DNA of 63,878 nt, filler included, from Hyphochytrium catenoides (lineage: Eukaryota; Protista; Hyphochytriomycota), in assembly GCA_900088475.1 (NCBI GenBank). It is 10 parts of 10 records of this genome, joined end to end, with 100 filler letters (N's around TTAATTAATTAA, not from the genome) between each part and the next. Parts side by side here need not be neighbours in the genome. Positions count along the whole stretch, not along the records: positions 1 to 11,386 come from FLMG01004031.1; 9 more parts are not named here. One strand, written 5' to 3'. Below the pieces are notes generated by a model, which saw only the letters and a list, made by a program, of their open reading frames with translations, made no database searches and was not told where the DNA came from. Within the stretch, counting starts at the first letter, position 1, and each line of letters starts with the position of its first letter. The position numbers and the translations under genes are program-made. Shown here one piece after another: positions 1 to 11,386 of the stretch.

Positions 1-345
1 CGGATCTCCCACACCTGGGGGACAGGGAAGGGAAAAGATAAGAAGAGAAGGGTGAGGAGGGAGAAGAGGAAACAGTGATCAAGATAAACAGACAGATGAA
101 GACGTCAGGAGAGAAGCAGACAAGAGCAATGGTAAATGTCAGAGTATAAGAGAGAGAGAAAGAGGGAGAGAAGCAAACAAGAGAGCAAGAAAGAGGAACG
201 GAAGCATTACCTCGCACGGTTCAAACCAGACTGAAGGAGTTTCGTTGGTGATGACGTAGGACTGACGTTGGACCGAAAGAGGAGACATAGAGAGAAAGGG
301 ACATAGAGAGAAAGAGAGAGAGAGAGAGGGAGAAAGAGAGAGGGG

Positions 346-377
<32 letters not shown>

Positions 378-761
378 AANNNNNNNNNNNNNNNNNNNNN
401 NNNNNNNNNNNNNNNNNNNNAGAGAGAGAGAGAGAGAGAAGCGTCATAGTGCAGAGACAGTGGAAGAGTCAGGTCCAGAACGAAGAAACACCTAGGCTGC
501 ACCGCTTTGCGGCTTTCTTCCTCTCTCTGTCACAGGCTGTGCCCCAGCTCTTCTCTCTTCTTACCTTCTGTTTATCGGAGATCTTGGTCTTATATTCCTC
601 TGTCTTTCTCTTATAGAACTCATCGGTGAAGCCGGACATACAGCGACAGACGCTCTCAAGCTCTCCTTTCTCTCGGTTATACGCTGCAAGAAGAAAAGGA
701 GAGAACCAGCCGGCTTTGCGGCCGTTCCCATACCATGCTCCTGAAGAATGAGCGAACGGGG

Positions 762-807
<46 letters not shown>

Positions 808-1391
808 GAGAAGAGTGAGAGAGTGAAAGAGAGAGAGGAGAGAGCTAAGCGACCATGCTTTAGCCACCACCCTTTTTGTGAGCACCGGCTTTGGCTCTCT
901 CTCTCTCTCTCGCAATGTCCCTAGATGCTCTTGGCCCCCTTCCAATCTCTACCTTTCTCTTTTCATTCTCCCTCTTCATTTTTCTCTTTGACTCACCGAT
1001 AGGAACAAGATCAATGGATTCGTGCAGCGTTGCGAGGTAATCTTTCTTCAACTTTAGCCAAGAACCGGTCCGTTTGTCCGCCTCATAGCTACTCTGAGGA
1101 CCATCCAACAGCTGAACATGAAGAAAGAGGAGACAGAGACAGAAGGAAAGAGAAAAAAAGACAGAGAGAGAGAGAGAGAGAGAGAAGAGGGAACGAGAGA
1201 GAAGAGGAAAAGAGAAAAGAGTGGAGGTAAGGAAAAGTCGGTGAGAGTTATGGGTGAGACCTACGAAGAGCGACGATTATCACGAATAGTAGAGAGATGG
1301 TGACGTGGAGATGGAAACCAGCAGGCAGAACAAAGAGAGAGAGGCGAGAGAGGGAAAGAGGAAAGAGCAAAACAAAAAAAATAAAAAAGAA

Positions 1392-1442
<51 letters not shown>

Positions 1443-1898
1443 GAATAACGACTTCCGCCATGTGGAACAGCATAGAAAGGTGAGAAAGAGTGAGACCTTG
1501 CACATCAATCCTTCGCAGTTGTTTTCTATTGACTCTGTGAGGAAGCTGCTAACTAGCCTTTCCGTCTCTTCTTCTGACTTCCCTTCTTTCTCTTCCGTCA
1601 GGGAAGAAGATGGGGTTGGTGAAGTGGAAGGGAGAGAAGAGAGAGAAGATGACGAAGGGCCGATGGCACTGACTTCTAGGCTCGTGGTAAAGGTCAGACA
1701 TCCATCCACGGGCTTGAAAGCCTCCATCAGCCTGGTCGCAAAGTTCACGGCGGGCGGTGGAAGTGAGAGAGAGGGACACACGCAGAGAAGGGGAGAAGAG
1801 GTACAAGGAGAGAAGAAAGAAAAGAGAAGAGCGGTGCGGGTTGGAGGTTGAAAAAAAGGAGAGAGAAGAGCGGGGGGGGGCGGATTGGGGGTGAGACA

Positions 1899-1932
<34 letters not shown>

Positions 1933-2404
1933 CAAAGAGAGAGTGGGGTGAGAGTGTTTCCAGCTTACTTCTTCCTTCTCTCTCTGAAGGGCGCGGTGAG
2001 CAATGGCTCATCGTTCAGCACCATCAGATCAAAGAGAAAGGCGCAGACGGTGATGTCAGATCCCTCTCCTTCCCTCATCTTCTTTGGTCGGTTACTGAGA
2101 GTCTGAAAGGGAAGAATGACGGGAGCTTTCTCTTTATCTCTCCGGTCGACAGCCACCAGCTCAGCATCTACCACGAAAGACATTGTACCGGGAGACAGAG
2201 ACTCCTACCGATTGTGGCAGGAGAGAAAGGGCTTAGTACTGGCCGAGTAACCGGACTAATGCTTGGAAGAGAGAAAGAGAGAGAGAGAGAGAGATGAAGG
2301 GCAGGCATGCTGAGAAAGGGAAATGTGTCGAGGGAGAGACACATTAGAGCCCCACGTGGAGGGCGGTGTCTGCACATTGCTCGCGTCTCTCAGTCTCTCT
2401 CTTT

Positions 2405-2435
<31 letters not shown>

Positions 2436-5400
2436 GCGACCTCCATTCCCCCCAACCACACACACATCTTCTCTCTCTCTTCCTTCCTCTCTATGTCGAT
2501 CTTCCTATTCTGGCTTCTTTTCTCCTCACCAGTATAATGCTGTGAATATCTGCCCACTTCTCCGTGGTCTCGTCCAGTTGCCGACTGTAGACAGAGACCT
2601 GGCCGTCTACCCATCACAATGGAGAGAGAGAAGAGAGACAGACAGAAGAGAAAGAGAGAATCACTGACGCAGAACTGAGAGGAGAGACACATAGTGAGAG
2701 AGAGAGAGACAGGTTTGATGCTTTCTAGGGTTAGAGCACCTACAGACGTGAACATGGATCAAGAAAGAGAGAGCAGAAAAGGCACTCTAAAGCCAAAAAG
2801 AAATGGGAAGGAGGCATCGGGAGCAGCTCCTGGAGCTTCTCACCTCGTCGTCCATGGATCTGCGCACGTTGACTGCAGATAATAACGGAACCAGGGACAT
2901 GGTGAAGAGAGAGGAAGAAAGAAAGAGAGCAGACAGTTAGAAAGAAGTAGAAGGTTAATGTTAATGAATGAAGTCACGAGAATTTAAGCAGCGCTGCAGC
3001 TGGCGAGGGACAGACGGCCGAGCCCAGAGAGGAACGGGTCAAAGAGAACGGGGAGTACGATAAGAGAGAGATGAGAGAGGGCATGTCCGTAGGATCAGAG
3101 AGAGAGAGAGAAGAGCAGATGGGGCTAAGCAGAGAGAGAGAGAGCAAGAAAACGGGAGAGAGTGCAACAAACGCAAAGGCGGCTCACCCATCGTATTTGT
3201 ACTCGCAGAGGAAGGGCTGGTTCTTGAAAGTCTTGAAGAGCTCTTCATAGCCACTGCAAATCTAGAGCAAAGAATAAGGGAGAGAAACACCAGGAGAGGC
3301 AAGAAAGAGAGCTTCCTGCCCCGACAAGTAGAATGCACCAGCAGCAAATCGTCCTTGGATACCAGGGTGATGATTATAATAGAGAAAACTCTCCTCTTGT
3401 TCTCTCCCAGAGGATGAGGAATCTGCCCATGCTCCGCGTCATAACTGCACCAATTCCATACTTCGGCATCCAGTCTCTCTCTTTTTCTCTCCGCGTTTCT
3501 CTATCTCTGTCTCTCTCTCTCTGTCTCTTTCTCTCTCCCCTCTCTTTGCCTCACCTTTCCGCACATTGGCTTGATAGGCACTCCGACTGTAGGTTGAGAG
3601 CGCTGAGCGAGAAGCTCCACTCCGCCCTCCAGCATTGGGGGAACCACTAGGAAGAGACTGGGAGAGAGAGAGAAACTCTCTTTTACGCTCTCTTGCGCCT
3701 TGCTTAAGAGCGCTTCCACCTGTTGAGGGAGAAGCGGGATCCTGGGAGAGCCGGAAGCTGCGGGAAAAGGATAAGAGAAAGGGCGATAAGAAGAAGGGAA
3801 AGATGAACCAGGGAGAATGGCAGTGGCAAGACGTGGGGAGCAGAGAGAATTGAGCGGTAGAGAGATAGGAGAAGCCATTTAGCCGAACCAAAAGGAATAT
3901 TGGGGTAGAGAAAAAGTATAGCCAAACTCTCTCTCTCTCTGTCTGCCATTCTAATACGTCCCTTTCTCTCTTTCTCTCTCTCTTTGTCTCTTTCTCTCTC
4001 ACTCTGTCTCCCTCTCTCTCCCTCTCTCTCTCTCTTCTGCCTACCTTTGGCATCCTGCTCAAGTCTATGGTAGGTGACAGCCCGCGCTAAGGCATAGAGA
4101 GAACTTAGCACTGTCGCGCCAATCCGCAGGTGAGCCACCAAGGCGCGCACCAAGTATCTGAGGAAGAGTTAGTGGGATGTATGGGCTGGACGAGGAAAAG
4201 AAGAGAGAGAAAGGAAGAGGAGTATGAAAGAGAGAGGAAAGGGAGAATAGACGTCAAGAAAGTCGTAGCTTCCAGGCCCAAAGCTACGGCAGCTCATAAG
4301 AAGGAGACTGAGAGAGTGAAGCCACCGATGGATGGTCTCTTCTACCGCTTTATCGGGAAAAAATAGCTAAAAGTTGAGGAGGACAGGGTAATATGAAAGC
4401 AAAGGAAAGAGAGAGATTGAGAGAGAAAGAGGGAGAGAGAGATGACGAAGATGAAGGGAGCTAAGGGAGAGACAGAGGATAAGCAAGCTGGGCAAGAGGC
4501 TTACTGACTTTGTCTCTTGCGGCTGGCAAGCCCTAAGAAGCCCTACAATCATCTTCTTCTTTCTCTCATTACTTCCTTGGCCTTTCTCCTTGGCAATCTT
4601 CTCCATTGTCTCCACCACGTGGCCAATCCCTAGCGGCCCTTTGGCGCCGTTTCCTCTTGTCTTCCCGCTCGGAAGAGAGAAGGAAGAAATAGTGGACTGG
4701 CTCTGTTTGCAGGCCGCAGCAACATCACCTGTTGAAGGAAAGGGGATCAGAGAGAGAATAGAGGTCAAGAGATATTATACGGTGGCAGGAGAAGGAGAGA
4801 ACGAGAGAGAAGAAAGGAGAGCGAGCGAGGGAGAGAGCCGAAAAGAGAGAGCAACAGAAAGGGAGAGAAAAGATTGAGAAACGGAGTGGCACATTTAAAA
4901 GGGCTGAGGCTCTTCCTGGAAGAGAGATAGACCATTCCACGGACCAAAACGTGACAAGAAAGGAAAAGAGAGAAGAAGGAAAGCAAAAGGGGAGAGAGGA
5001 AGACAAGAGAGACTCACCAATGTCTCCCATCTCTCTGTACAAATTCCTCAGGTGGGTGGCAGAGGCTCCTGTTGCCTCTCTAATAGCGGCAGAGATGAGA
5101 GACCCTCCGATCCCGCTCTGTAGAGAGAGGTAAGAGTGACCATGAGGATCAGAGAGAAGAGAGAAGAGAGAGAGATCGAAAGGGATAAAGAGCAACCACT
5201 AGCATTGCCATGGGAAGCACAGAGAGAGAGAGAATATAGTCGCATAAAGAGAGCAACAGAGAGAGGAGAGAGAGATAGAAGGAAGGAACAAGAGGGAGAG
5301 AAAGTGAGAGACAGAGACACATAGAAGAGAGAGAGACAGAGAGCGAGAGAGAGACACTCTCATGAGACCTGTTGAGGAATGGCAGCGTTGGCGCAGAGGA

Positions 5401-5980
5401 GAACGGCAGGGAGAACGTCTTCAGGACTACGAGCCTTATTTGAAGAGAGAGACACCGAGTCAGAGCCCGCTCTACAGAGAGAACAGCAGGCGGGACAGAG
5501 GGAAGAGACAAGAGGATGTAGCGAAGGAAAGGCAATAAAGAAGAGAATGGATGGAGAGAGATGGGGACAAGAGACGGAACCTGAAGAGAGTGGGAAAATG
5601 CGAGAGAAGAAATGGATAGATATCTAAAAAATGAGGGTTGACACAGGGAGAGAGGCGCTGGAGCCTGGAGGGAGGAGAGAGAGGGAGAATCGTAGAGAGG
5701 TGCACGGAATGGTGCATGATATCGTACGATTAGCGTCCTGAACAGGTTGGTGAGAATGAGAGTGATGGATAGTCTCTTCGTCGTTCCCAGCAGAAGATCA
5801 AAGGCGGCCGTTAGGCAAGCTGTGGCGGAGAGAGAAGAGAGAGAAAGTCAAGAGAGTACGTTCCTGAACCAGAACAAAGGAGGCAAGGGGCCTCGTGGAG
5901 GATGGGAAGAAAGAGTGACGTACATGAAAAGAGAAACACAGAGGCAACGAAGAGAAATAAAAGAGGGAGAGAGAGAGAGG

Positions 5981-6027
<47 letters not shown>

Positions 6028-8182
6028 TGCATATAGAGGAGAGATCGCAATAGCTGGGAAACAACCTAAACCGAAAAGAGTAGACAATGATAATGGGAGA
6101 CTGAAGAGTAGGAAAAGAACGAGGGACGGGAAAGAGAAAGGAATGGAAGAAAGTCTAAGTCCGTCTCTCTACCGAATGGCGCTCGTTCTCCCACTTTCCA
6201 GTGGTTCCAGCCCTTTAAGGGGTCAAACTTCTGAAGAGGAAGCTGGAAGTCGAGTTCTCCTCTCGCACTCTCTTCTTCAACGCCTCTCTCCATCTGCTCT
6301 TTCCTCTCTTTCTCTCCTTCCCCATCCGCTTTCTCTCTCTTGGCTTCTCTCTTTTCCGGGGAGAGAAGAGGCGCAGTCTGTGGGGAAGAGAGAGAGGAGA
6401 AAGCCACAGGAGCACTTTCTCTTTCTGAAAAGGAAGACCGAAGAGGTGGCACTGCAATCTCCTCTCCCTTCCCTGCTTGTGTTTCTCCTTCCTCACTTTT
6501 AATTTCTTGCGCCTCCTCTCCCATATTTCCTCTCTCCTGGAGAGAGAGAGAAGTCTCCGGTTTCTCTCTCTCTTCGGAAATGGTGAACAGAGCTTGGGGC
6601 TTGAGTCTTCCCTCTCTTTTTTCTTTCCCCTTATCCGTTCTGTCTCCCATCTTCTGAGGTGTCTCTCTTTCCTCTCTCTCTCTTCTTCCATCTCTTCTAT
6701 CTTCCTTGAATTTTAGCTGCGTCTCTCCCAAGGAGAGAGTGAAAGAGGGAGAAGAGTTGGAAGAAGAGAGAGAAAGAGGAGAAGAGACCGGGGGAGGAGA
6801 GGACCGGGAGCCAAAAAAAGAGGTGATGTGCTGCTGTTTGAGGGGAGAAGGAGAGAGCGAGGACGGAGGAAGCTTTCTCTTTCTCGTTGGTTTGTTGGCT
6901 GTCTCCGCCTTCTTCGCTTTTTTTCCGGCCCCAGCCTTGTCTTTACCTCGTTTGGCTTCTCTCTCTCTTTCTTCCGAATCTGTTGTCTCTTCTTCCTTGT
7001 CCTCTCTTCTTTCGTCCCCTTCCGCTGCCCTAGGCCGAGACCTTTGCCGCAGGACAGAGGAAGAGAGTGACGGGATGCTGGTGTTCTCTCTCTCTTGTTG
7101 AAGAAAGAAGGACTCTGGGAGGAAGAAGGGTCACAATTGAGAGAGAGAGAGAGAGAGAGAGAAAAGAGGTGAGAGAAAAGTAATGGAGACTATATTTTGC
7201 CCAGCATAAAGCAGGGAACGGGGGCTTTCACAAGAGAATAATTAGAGAGAAGAGAGTGGTATAAGAGAGACAGCTACAGAGAATAGAAACCGCTATAGAT
7301 GTATTCATAGAGAAGAGAGAAAGAGAGAGAGAGAGAAGAGAGACCGGAAGAACTATATGGTCGACGAGGAGAAGGCGAGAAAAGCAAGAGCAAGAGAGTG
7401 CAGAGAGGGGGAAGACAGAGAAAGAGGGACGGAGCGAGGAAGAGAGAGTGACGGGGAATCGCCAAAAAGAGGAAAAAGACAGAGAGAGAGAGAGGGGGGG
7501 GGGGAGGAAGAAGAAGATAGAAGCGGAGTATCACAGAGAGACGGGAGCAGGGAACAGAGAGAGAGAAGCATGGAAACAAAGAGAGAAAGAGAGAGAGCAA
7601 AAGAGGGAGAGGGAGAGAGAAAGACCTGCAGCTTGTTGGATGTTCCATTCTGAGGCCTCCAGCTGCAGTTCTGCCTCGACCTTTCCAAGCCCCGTCAGGA
7701 GCATCAGCTGGTCAACTGCCTCTTCTTTCTCTTCTTCTCTCTTTCCGTCTCTCTCCATCTCTCTCTCTCTATCAACTTTGGCTTCCGAAGCCCTTCCTGT
7801 CAACCCTTCTCCAGCCATTTCTCTCTCTCGATCCTGTTCTCTCTTCGTTATTTCTCTTCCTCCCTGCTCTGGATGTGAGAGGACTGAGAAAAGAGGACGT
7901 CAGCCTATAGACTTGAGTCAATGAAGGGAGGAGAGAGAGAGAGAGACAGAGAGAGAGAGAGAGACAGAGTGAGAGAGACGCAGCAACGAAAGAGAAAAGG
8001 AGCGCAGATCAGAACAAGAGAACGAGAGGCGGAGCGAGACGGAAAAGAGAGATGGAGACGGAGAGAGAGAGAGAAGCACCTTCGATATCGGAGTCAAGTT
8101 CCTCTGTCTGTTTATCTCCAGTGCTGCGTCGACTTGTTGCTTCTCTCTTCTCTTCCGTCATCGCGTTCTCTTCTTCTGCCAT
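1..8182 (-). CDS. ATP-dependent DNA ligase, LIG1/LIG6 family (LIG6-like); about 19 exons visible, 3' end runs off the window
   Basis: Hand-spliced GT-AG exons give MAEEENAM..., UBA-like QLMLLTGLGKVEAELQLEASEWNIQQAAESFF, PIP box QQHITSFF (~6813-6836), and the DNA-binding domain (LPLQKFDPLKGWNHWKVGERAPFACLTAAF; SPEDVLPAVLLC; GIGGSLISAAI; LRIG). Then PIKPMCGK, motif I CEYKYDG|QRAQIH (~3189-3210, 2844-2876), motif III VVDAELVAVD, IIIa FLFDLMVLN, IV CEGLMCK, V WLKLKKDY, and the OB domain (DLVPIGAWYGNGRKAGWFSPFLLA; CRCMSGFTDEFY; WFEPCEVWEIR). Confidence 0.95.
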
Positions 8183-8497
8183 TGAAAGGAAAGACCTCTT
8201 CTCTCTATTACTCGTCTGGATTCTCAGTGTCAGAGTCAGAGGCACTGCGAGGACCCTAGTTAAAGAGGGGGAGAAAGAGAGAGAGAGCTAGAAGAGAGAG
8301 GGAGAGAAATAAGAGAGAGAGAGAGATCCACCTCAAAGGAAAAAGACAGCGATCTACAACGGAAAAGCCATTTAGCAAGGGTGTCAACCTTGTACCATAA
8401 GATCCATAAGATAGAGAGGGAGGAGTAACGAGAGAGAGAGAGCGCGAGAGAGAGACAGCGAGAGAGAGACAGCGAGAGAGAGAGAGAGCCGCGCGGG

Positions 8498-8541
<44 letters not shown>

Positions 8542-9357
8542 CACAGCATCTCTGGAGGGACTAGAAGAGGAAGCGCAATGATGTCAGAGGATCAGAAGCC
8601 GCGCGAATCCAAGAGCAGCGATGATCGCGGGCCCCGATCCAAGATATAGTTACAACATATTTGAGCTGGAGACCAACTTACAAAGCCTTATTTGAAATAA
8701 CGCTGAGAGGAAGTTTCAGAGAGGGAAGAGACATTCACAGGAGAGACTGTTCGCTTTTCTTTCTCTCTCTCTCTCTCTCTTCTCCCCTCCCCGGTCTTCA
8801 AGGCCATCTTTCTCTCTCTCTCTCCCTCCCTACCTCTCTAAGGCCATCTTTCTCTCTCTCTCTCTCCATCATTCCTCAGTCTGATGACCCTTCTGCCACC
8901 TTTCTCTCTCTACGTCTATAGTGGGTGGTACTTACCATTCTTGTTGTCTGTCCTATCACTGTCGTTGGGCAAAGAAGCTAAGCTATTAAGAAGCATCAGC
9001 AAGAGAGAGAGAACAAGGCATGGACAGAGCTACTCTCTGTACGCACCTACATGTGTCCACAGAGGGGACAGCGTGCTGACCAGAAGGAAAGGAAAAGGAG
9101 AGAAGAAGCTTGGTCGGGAGAGAGAGAGCGAGAGAGAGCCAATAGAATGCCTTGTCAAACTGACTTAAAACTTAATAGCAAGAGCGGTTGCTGGAGCTCT
9201 TTAGCTGTCCGTATGCTGATTCTCCTAGGATTAGCTCTACCTGAACCCCCTATTGGCCACTGGCCTACTAATCCCTCTCTCTCTTCTTTTCTCTCTCTCC
9301 CTCTCCATATATTCATATCTAGGTTCTTTCCTACAAGATATGTCTCTGCCTTATAGT

Positions 9358-11071
9358 CTACTCATGTCCTCCGCCTACGCTGCCAGGCATAGCAACCTGA
9401 GCGGTAGCGAGAGAAGAGACCTCGTCGGTCACAGGAGAGAAGAGAAGACGCTTGCCGGTTGGGCTCTCTCTGAAGCGGTAGAAGAAGCGGCAAGCAAGAG
9501 AGCGGATTGGAGGGGAAGTGAGGGCAAGGAGAAGGACAAAGAAAGAGATGCTGCCAAGGAATAGAGCGACGCCCACCAGGAGTGGGACCCACAGGGGAGA
9601 GGTGAAGAGAGCAGAGAGAGACACCGGCACAATCCAGAGAGGGAATGTGAACAGAGTGATCAGTCCTGCAGGGATCAGGAAAGCGAGAGCGAGGCCGATG
9701 AGAGCGAAAAGCACTGCCAGGCCGGTGGCGGCAGAGGTGAAGAGAATCTTCCTGTTGCTGACCACATACTTGGCGCCCTGCGCAGCGGGCCTGAAGAGAT
9801 AGACGGACGAGACACGAGAGAGAGAGAAGCAGCGCATTATGTGAGTTTCGGGCAGCAGAAGAGAGACAAGGAGCACATCGGGCAGACCTAATAGACCAAG
9901 AAAGAGAGCCGCAAAAGATTCAAAACGACATGAAGAAGGCGTGGGAAAGACAGAACCTTTGCCACTTTCAGCTCTCTCTCTCTCTCTCCCTCACTATCTT
10001 ACCCCTTAACATAGCCCCAGGTGTATAGCAGCATAAGGTTTCTGACTCCAATCAGACGATCGACGAGCGCATCCCGTAGATCAAAGATCACGCCAAGCTT
10101 GCCTACGAACAGACACAAAGGTTAGGAAAGGAAACAATGTGGCTCTCTCTTCAACGTGTGGCTTCTCTCTCGCGCTGAGAAGCCACCTTATATGCTCTTT
10201 TCCGCTTATCCTCCTCCAAACCGATCACTAGGAACCCTTCGAAGCCCTACTCTCTCTCTCTCTCTCTCTCTTTCTGTGTCTGTCTCTCTTTGTCCAGCTT
10301 ACCAATGAGGCGAACAGGGGCGCGGAGAGGAGGAAGAAAAGTGACGTTAAGCTTCACTTCTCCTCTTGGAGCCTTAGCTGCTCCTGAGTCCTTCAAACGG
10401 ACCAAGACAGTGGCTGCCTCGGGATTGTCGAAGCCTTGAGGACACAAAGACGATTAGGCGTCACATGAGCGAAAGAAGCGAGACAGAGACGAAGAGATGT
10501 ATTCTAAATGACGTATGTAAGCCAGATAGAGACGGATATTGGAAAAGAGAGCGGGCACTTACGGGCATCGCTGAGGATCTTGCTAATGTCCACAGTGTTG
10601 CTTCCTAGCACCTCATCAGGCGCTCCATCCTTCTTCTCCCAGACCTGGACCGAGATGGTTGCCTTCTCTCCTCTCTCTACTCCTCCATAGTGAATTAGCA
10701 TCTTGCTGCCCTCTTCTTCCTTGAACTTGTGGGTGGAGAGAGTCGTCTTGACGGGAAGAGAGCTTGCAACACCTCCATCCTTGCTGCCAACCCTGATGGT
10801 GACTGACGAGCCAGACAAGAAGGAGGAGAGACAAGTGAGCAAGGTGGAGATGTGGGTTTTCGGAGACGAGAATCTTGTTCCAGACGAAGGCACGGGAAGA
10901 CCCCGTCCATGACAGAAGAGGAATAACGAAAGGAGAGACGTCCTCTTTAATAGTCGTCTTTAGGAAAGACTTACCATAGAACTTCTCTCTCTGTACCTCG
11001 GGAGCAACAGGAAGGTTAGTCACTTCAAGCAGCTCGAACTGCAGGGACGCGGGCTGGTGGAGCTGGACCAT
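9358..11071 (-). CDS. C2-domain protein with C-terminal oleosin-like hydrophobic hairpin (putative lipid-droplet protein), 5 exons
   Basis: Exons ~11071-10975, 10802-10563, 10434-10303, 10102-10003 and 9790-9358 join in frame via GT-AG introns. The N-terminal half has a C2 pattern (LQFELLEVTNLP; FYVTIRVG; ISVQVWEKK...DEVLGSNTVDISKI; RGEVKLNVTF). The C-terminal half has 81 consecutive uncharged residues containing FPLWIVP and TSPLWVP. Confidence 0.75.
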
Positions 11072-11386
11072 CTAGATGGTGGGGAACGAATAGAATATCT
11101 GTCATTACAACGGCCTTGTTCTACTCTCGGTGGAGATGCCATATATCCCTTGTGCTTTGCGTCTATGGCAATACTGTCCGTGATGTTGTTACAAATGCTA
11201 GAGATGGGGTCTCTCCTCTCTCTCTTTTCCTCTATCTCTCCTTCGCGCTGCGCACATCCTGGCGCGGTCTCAGCCTTTTTACGCCTACGATCTCGGTTCT
11301 TACCTTTTGCTTGGGATGTGGCGGCAGGTCAGCGATTGTTCTTGATCTGAGGCTGGGCTGGGAACTTCGGAACTGGAACTTCCTTT

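Follow-up and report, generated by a model that had tools for sequence, protein, structure and literature searches.

A minus-strand locus at positions 9358-11071 of a 63,878-nucleotide stretch of Hyphochytrium catenoides DNA (hereafter the window; NCBI GenBank assembly GCA_900088475.1, ten parts of ten records joined end to end, of which positions 1 to 11,386 come from FLMG01004031.1) is, judging from its sequence, an intact five-exon gene for a 333-residue membrane protein. The predicted protein joins an N-terminal C2 domain, through a linker helix, to a long charge-free hydrophobic domain broken by prolines and followed by a basic tail. On balance, we favour the reading that it is a C2 tether or sensor that faces the cytosol and is anchored through a hairpin in a membrane derived from the endoplasmic reticulum (ER). 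The hydrophobic domain would enter this membrane from the cytosol, forming a helical hairpin that turns at a T-S-P-x-W hinge; both of its ends would remain cytosolic, and the protein would lack a lumenal domain. The linker helix would hold the C2 domain outward, where it may bind, without Ca2+, acidic phospholipids of that membrane or of one apposed to it, the protein as a whole acting in the manner of an MCTP or an extended synaptotagmin (E-Syt).

The five exons total 1002 nucleotides (nt), i.e., 333 codons and a stop, with no internal stops, and all four introns have GTAAG at the 5' end and AG at the 3' end. In the order of transcription, the gene comprises:

10975..11071, minus strand: exon 1, 97 nt, with the start codon at 11071-11069 and ending in phase 1; C2 strand 1 and loop 1 (..LEVTNLPVAPEVQREKFY)
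10803..10974, minus strand: intron 1, 172 nt, GTAAGT...CAG
10563..10802, minus strand: exon 2, 240 nt; central strands of the C2 sandwich together with loop 3 (..VQVWEKKDGAPDEVLG..)
10435..10562, minus strand: intron 2, 128 nt, GTAAGT...AAG
10303..10434, minus strand: exon 3, 132 nt; final C2 strands and the conserved domain-closing PP-x-R
10103..10302, minus strand: intron 3, 200 nt, GTAAGC...TAG; not in the second copy of the gene, L002
10003..10102, minus strand: exon 4, 100 nt; part of the long linker helix (..DLRDALVDRL..YTWGYVK)
9791..10002, minus strand: intron 4, 212 nt, GTAAGA...CAG; not in L002
9358..9790, minus strand: exon 5, 433 nt including the stop at 9360-9358; 143 residues, with the hydrophobic hairpin domain and the conserved basic tail

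Searches of the window gene used single exons as queries, and an orthologue, P0001, served as stand-in for the whole protein. P0001 is an uninterrupted 333-residue relative encoded on a 1238-nt contig, and it has the same start Met as the window gene. The exons are collinear with it and do not overlap (P0001 residues 1-32, 35-111, 117-155, 165-188 and 190-312); identity per exon is 51-71%, and split codons explain the junction residues. Residues 1-32 encoded by exon 1 include 22 identities to the first 32 residues of P0001, and exon 4 has 17 identities over the 24 residues at 165-188, where R165 and D166 form a family-invariant R-D pair. R149 of P0001, in the region of exon 3, is also invariant across the family. 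A family profile matched exon 2 (E 7.1e-10, profile positions 29-114), exon 3 (E 3.6e-6) and exon 5 (E 2e-35). Because the exons are collinear with P0001, three of them are matched by the profile, and intron positions and phase are shared with L002, we consider the gene model sound. A first-pass annotation of this DNA had joined five exons in frame into a protein of ~335 residues; the exons, with their canonical GT..AG introns and in-order alignment to P0001, hold up, as does the size class, the exact figure being 333. In the published H. catenoides assembly the mean intron length is 208 bp, with 3.64 introns per gene (PMC5795050).

The second copy of the gene lies on another contig of the 61-Mb assembly and is 37-40% identical to the window gene over the hydrophobic domain:

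G000:C1638:10543-13869, gene at 707-1830, plus strand: L002, with three exons at 707-860, 921-1169 and 1229-1830; about 334 residues

L002 has the same architecture of C2 domain, linker and hairpin, and both of its introns occupy the same alignment positions, in the same phase (1), as introns 1 and 2 of the window gene. A profile built from 14 family members and run on the genome matched only these two loci. The L002 introns are ~60 nt long with CTAAC-like branch sites, whereas those of the window gene are 128-212 nt. This difference in intron style raised the question of whether L002 comes from a foreign organism in a mixed assembly. The common intron positions disfavour that explanation, as does a tree of the hydrophobic domain, in which the window gene, P0001, L002 and P0002 form one clade (99/100) apart from the oomycete sequences; the simpler reading is therefore that L002 is a paralogue in one genome. 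On the minus strand at L002:2292-3173 there is an S1/P1 nuclease gene (Pfam E 3e-14), convergent with the paralogue.

An exhaustive HMMER search with an alignment of the window copy and L002 against 1.84 billion cluster representatives (E ≤ 0.001) returned 15 related clusters in all, the best being P0001 (E 6e-42). The first-pass annotation had proposed looking for the same architecture in other protists, and all 10 of the full-length relatives aligned from this search have it. All named members are from Peronospora, Hyaloperonospora or Albugo, and their only label, where there is one, is "C2 domain-containing protein"; the remaining sequences, which are unnamed, stem from metagenomes and public read assemblies. 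A word-indexed protein search with the open frame of the window gave no match, and the same kind of search with the family alignment gave three proteins among the 8000 candidates sharing most words. In the ESM Atlas there was no usable match to exon 5, and P0006 matched generic C2 clusters only (score 0.80). A literature search found no paper joining a C2 domain with a proline-knot droplet hairpin.

The N-terminal half of the protein is, on the combined evidence of profile comparison and structural modelling, a true C2 domain. When the family profile was compared with solved C2 domains, synaptotagmin-7 (Syt7) C2A came first (E 5.6e-14). The whole-protein structure and the fold search were made on P0001 rather than on the joined protein of the window. 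In the AlphaFold2 (AF2) model of P0001, computed from the family alignment (mean predicted local distance difference test score, pLDDT, 70), residues 8-145 form the eight-stranded β-sandwich of a C2 domain (pLDDT of this block mostly 60-85). All of the Foldseek matches listed for this model in the PDB are C2 domains with a probability of 1.00, the top matches having E values of 4e-8 to 1e-6 and target-normalised TM scores of up to 0.78; they include Itch, intersectin-2, CAR4, E-Syt and otoferlin. Six of ten relatives exceed the cut-off of 22 bits for the Pfam C2 model (PF00168), with scores of 28.9-47.7 bits. The window exons scanned singly gave no C2 match, a result that is uninformative because the domain is spread over three exons; in the clade of the window gene the assignment is based on the family profile and the structure. 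One C2 domain is present in each full-length family member aligned.

Alignments of the family with Syt7 C2A place Pro and Lys at the loop-1 Asp positions of the window protein (LPVAPEVQREKFY vs LPAKDFSGTSDP in Syt7). The loop-3 D-x-D is not conserved, and at most two acidic positions are left of the five Ca2+ ligands, so that the full set of five acidic ligands of the Ca2+-dependent C2 subclass is not present. Both the C2-like sandwich and the scarcity of acidic loop ligands reported in the first-pass annotation are thus borne out. Since the canonical ligands are largely gone, Ca2+-independent lipid binding by the C2 domain can reasonably be inferred. The protein has no N-terminal signal sequence, and the C2 domain is therefore expected to face the cytosol.

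Exon 5 encodes the remaining elements of the proposed anchor:

9505..9747, minus strand: charge-free stretch ILFTS...LTSPPI, 81 residues without D, E, K or R; exon-5 residues 15-95
9583..9642, minus strand: family signature P-L-W-I-V-P-x9-P-L-W-V-P; exon-5 residues 50-69
9439..9504, minus strand: basic amphipathic helix and tail motif, R..L..R.....[RK]-x-[ST]-x2-G-x-[RK]-hydrophobic-hydrophobic-[YF]

Prolines occur at exon-5 residues 40, 50, 55, 65, 69, 93 and 94. The motif S64-P65-x3-P69 is present, and 8 residues separate S64 from the next proline upstream, P55 (P55-x8-S64-P65-x3-P69). Hydropathy along the domain is bimodal, peaking at residues 25-44 and again at 71-88 with a dip between them at 59-68, and both flanks of the charge-free stretch carry a net charge of +3. 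The first-pass description of this region was accurate in its count of 81 uncharged residues with central prolines, in the retained SPX3P with the first Pro 8 residues upstream, and in the basic flanks.

These features recur across the family. In all 17 sequences compared, which are 23-63% identical to the window protein over the hydrophobic domain, the charge-free stretch is 75-81 residues long and the motif P-x-W-x2-P-x9-P-x-W-x-P is found; none of its first three Pro or two Trp varies, and one member has G in place of the last P. The flanks are net basic on the C-terminal side in 17 of 17 sequences (+1 to +7) and on the N-terminal side in 14. Because the stretch and its Pro/Trp motif are kept in sequences this divergent, the comparison indicates that the charge-free stretch is not a chance feature. 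In the tail, which is predicted to be cytosolic, R96 is invariant and G112 nearly so.

The AF2 model of exon 5, also computed from the family alignment (mean pLDDT 83.6), consists of a helix at residues 13-63, a break at S64-P65-L66 and a second helix at 67-91 (pLDDT 86-96), with an amphipathic helix at 93-108. The linker helix, ~40 residues long, corresponds to a helix at 150-188 in the P0001 model. Structure prediction, which the first-pass annotation had suggested as a check, was thus carried out on P0001 and exon 5 and gave a C2 sandwich in the former and proline-broken helices in the latter. A hairpin with both ends in the cytosol is favoured because the flanks are basic, the putative loops are uncharged, and the centre is proline-rich and less hydrophobic.

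The closest working analogue of the family is the MCTP group. Like the window protein, MCTP1/2 and the plant MCTP/QUIRKY/FTIP proteins have cytosolic C2 domains N-terminal to a C-terminal hairpin-type anchor. MCTPs are ~700-1000 residues long with three or four C2 domains, whereas the window protein has one C2 domain in 333 residues, and its hydrophobic domain is a single unbroken run of 75-81 residues with a Pro/Trp signature of its own. Exon 5 was scanned with the MCTP-type PRT_C model (PF08372) at E ≤ 10, and ten relatives at E ≤ 1, in both cases without a match, and the features that define an MCTP, a PRT_C region and three or more C2 domains, are not found here. MCTP1/2 have been described as C2 domains on a hairpin anchor that act at droplet contact sites, and the human MCTP anchor behaves like a reticulon-homology domain in droplet-forming ER subdomains (PMC8351558). 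Since C2 domains on a hairpin at droplet sites have already been described for MCTP1/2 (PMC8351558), the tether principle is not new. The small family and its hairpin domain are undescribed; their design principle is already known.

Exon-sized, sub-threshold PRT_C matches (19-24 bits) occur at G000:C4422:114572-114751, C1030:195-479 and C3560:41071-41286, all on other contigs, which suggests that there are separate, genuine MCTP-like genes elsewhere in the genome. The E-Syt and tricalbin proteins also resemble the window protein, in that an ER hairpin anchor is combined with C2 domains reaching another membrane, and plant and trypanosome E-Syt C2 folds are among the Foldseek matches of P0001. 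E-Syts and tricalbins, however, have a short N-terminal anchor and an SMP lipid-transfer domain, whereas the anchor here is C-terminal and Pfam scans of the relatives showed no SMP-type family.

Several points weigh against a hairpin-anchored C2 protein of the ER as set out above: (i) The C2 domain of the window clade scores weakly against Pfam, P0001 reaching 13.6 bits where the cut-off is 22. (ii) The two arms of the exon-5 model are unequal, with 49 and 29 hydrophobic residues. (iii) The predicted TM score (pTM) of this model is 0.35, and the model therefore does not fix the tertiary arrangement. (iv) Foldseek and VIA-align searches of the exon-5 model against the PDB found no structural analogue; such matches as there were are generic long helices (Z ≤ 5.7, root-mean-square deviation mostly >20 Å), which are uninformative as to fold and topology. 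(v) A mostly conserved Pro-x-Gly at exon-5 residues 40-42 may form a second turn and so give three membrane passes. (vi) The hairpins of GPAT4, ALG14 and UBXD8 carry positive charge (arginine) at the hinge (PMC12687460), whereas the hinge of this family has none. (vii) A literature search with the accessions of the named members found no paper that mentions them.

The first-pass annotation had proposed a different placement, in which one polypeptide is anchored in the droplet and joins it to a second membrane. On this reading the protein would reside mainly on lipid droplets as a dedicated droplet-to-membrane tether, an oleosin-like proline-knot hairpin sitting in the monolayer and oil core of the droplet and the C2 domain making the contact. 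We regard this as possible, though unlikely. Oleosin hairpins are ~72 residues long, and the charge-free stretch of 75-81 residues comes near that length, a resemblance in kind that does not show homology. Further likenesses are the helix-breaking prolines of the mid-region, the S-P-x3-P of the window's protein and the amphipathic flanks. The oleosin knot P-x5-S-P-x3-P itself is not found; the motif of this family is instead P-x-W-x2-P-x9-[ST/A]-P-x-W-x-P, in which the position of the Ser is taken by S or A depending on the member. The predicted arms, moreover, lack the symmetry of oleosin, and the hairpin here is joined to a C2 domain of 150 residues and a linker helix of 40.

Nor is homology to oleosin detectable. 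The Pfam Oleosin model (PF01277) had no match in exon 5 at E ≤ 10 and none in eight of ten relatives; the other two, P0001 (13.7 bits) and P0003 (11.7 bits), fall below the cut-off of 25, and their scores stand among other sub-threshold membrane-family matches. The only Oleosin match in the whole genome, at G000:C1271:13171-13419 (L005:1501-1749; 23.3 bits), was rejected as a CT-repeat artefact (..SLSLSLSLSVLSFSF..) with an internal stop. As the same model gives this artefact 23.3 bits, the score of P0001 means little. Oleosin, caleosin, LDSP and StLDP are all absent from the 15 clusters of the exhaustive search. On the sequence evidence, then, the protein would be an analogue of oleosin and not a homologue: the oleosin-like proline hairpin of the first-pass annotation stands as regards charge-free length and hinge prolines, and fails as regards kinship, the Oleosin scores being noise, the knot spacing different and the Ser variable.

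Other droplet proteins offer partial parallels. Caleosin and steroleosin combine a proline-knot hairpin with a cytosolic domain, a Ca2+-binding EF-hand in caleosin and a dehydrogenase in steroleosin, and they resemble this family in fusing a hairpin anchor to a functional cytosolic domain. They differ from it in that its soluble part is a C2 domain whose Ca2+ site is degenerate, and Pfam scans gave no sequence relation. Among stramenopiles, LDSP of Nannochloropsis and StLDP of Phaeodactylum are class I hairpin proteins that likewise use proline-rich hydrophobic regions (PMC8100218), which argues for a droplet role. However, the term C2 domain appears nowhere in that review of stramenopile droplets (PMC8100218), and a search of the stramenopile-droplet literature found no paper that ties a C2-domain protein to these droplets.

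Hairpins of the ER-to-lipid-droplet class (class I/ERTOLD) have two hydrophobic helices, hinge prolines, basic flanks and Trp in the helices, proteins with lumenal domains are excluded from the class, and oleosin hairpins exceed the thickness of the ER bilayer (PMC12687460). Most of these sequence features (PMC12687460) are found in the family, which has hinge prolines, basic flanks, invariant Trp and no predicted lumenal domain. With no lumenal part and a hairpin longer than the bilayer is thick, the protein may be able to move onto droplet monolayers, and ER-to-droplet partitioning of the hairpin is physically plausible. Numerous hairpin proteins, reticulons and MCTPs among them, nevertheless remain in the ER. 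A broader proposal can be framed in which the family is a pseudofungal (oomycete and hyphochytrid) droplet-surface protein whose double Pro-x-Trp hairpin, of a kind not described before and evolved independently of the oleosin knot, sits in the droplet monolayer, while its Ca2+-independent C2 domain links droplets to a further organelle or to the ER or plasma membrane; we hold this to be rather doubtful.

An arrangement other than a hairpin is improbable. The hydrophobic domain might form three ordinary transmembrane helices (about residues 15-39, 41-63 and 67-91) with turns at I-P-A-G and T-S-P, in which case the tail would be lumenal or extracellular, the C2 domain cytosolic, and no special relation to droplets would be expected. 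Each of the three segments is 23-25 residues long, the Pro-x-Gly at 40-42 is conserved in most members, and AF2, which cannot place a membrane, may have drawn two helices as one. Such a topology, however, would violate the positive-inside rule, since the strongly basic conserved tail (+1 to +7) would not face the cytosol, and would require a middle segment that has two invariant prolines and the lowest hydropathy. In addition, the putative loops have no charged residue in any of the 17 members, and the Pro at residue 40 is missing in several of them. It is very improbable that the gene is mis-modelled or dead, its exons being chance open frames in CT-rich DNA or remnants of a pseudogene: the (CT/GA)n repeats abundant in the window do give rise to many spurious open frames, but each exon is collinear with P0001, which likewise has 333 residues, the splice sites are canonical with zero internal stops, three exons are matched by the family profile, and L002 has introns at common positions.

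If the hairpin stays in the ER, the family would be a modest addition to the known C2 membrane proteins. If it partitions to droplets, stramenopiles would have invented an anchor of oleosin length independently, and the protein would offer a compact natural tether for studying droplet contacts; if it sits at the droplet surface and docks droplets to other membranes, it would be the first C2 droplet tether made of a single polypeptide, and its anchor would form a new class. MCTPs and E-Syts, which are hairpin-anchored C2 proteins, organise membrane contact sites, and class I proteins reach lipid droplets via proline-hinged hairpins. In the present family a single C2 domain is paired with a hairpin domain for which there is no Pfam model, solved analogue or literature, and its Pro/Trp signature is unusually strict. 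Its named members belong to downy-mildew and white-rust pathogens, in which spore lipid storage is central to the life cycle, and a lineage-restricted membrane protein in these organisms is of interest.

Upstream of the gene, at window positions 11072-11386 on the minus strand, an AG directly precedes the start codon (..tctag|ATG), and near 11296 there is a donor-like GTAAGA; these splice-like motifs suggest a 5' untranslated region intron (~220 nt) upstream of the start codon. Downstream of the C2-hairpin gene, positions ~470-5200 carry pieces of an ATP-dependent DNA ligase gene with many introns, also on the minus strand. Pfam DNA_ligase_A_C matches the open frame at 472-945 (E 5e-8), and DNA_ligase_A_N matches at 4370-4768 (E 3e-9), with a weak match at 4728-5195. 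Positions 1-9300 are rich in (CT)n/(GA)n, with 982 bases in runs of at least 5 units and a plus strand that is 60% purine, and translation of these repeats on either strand yields many long spurious open frames of the SLSLSL or ERERER type. A 41-base run of N at positions 380-420 marks a scaffold gap.

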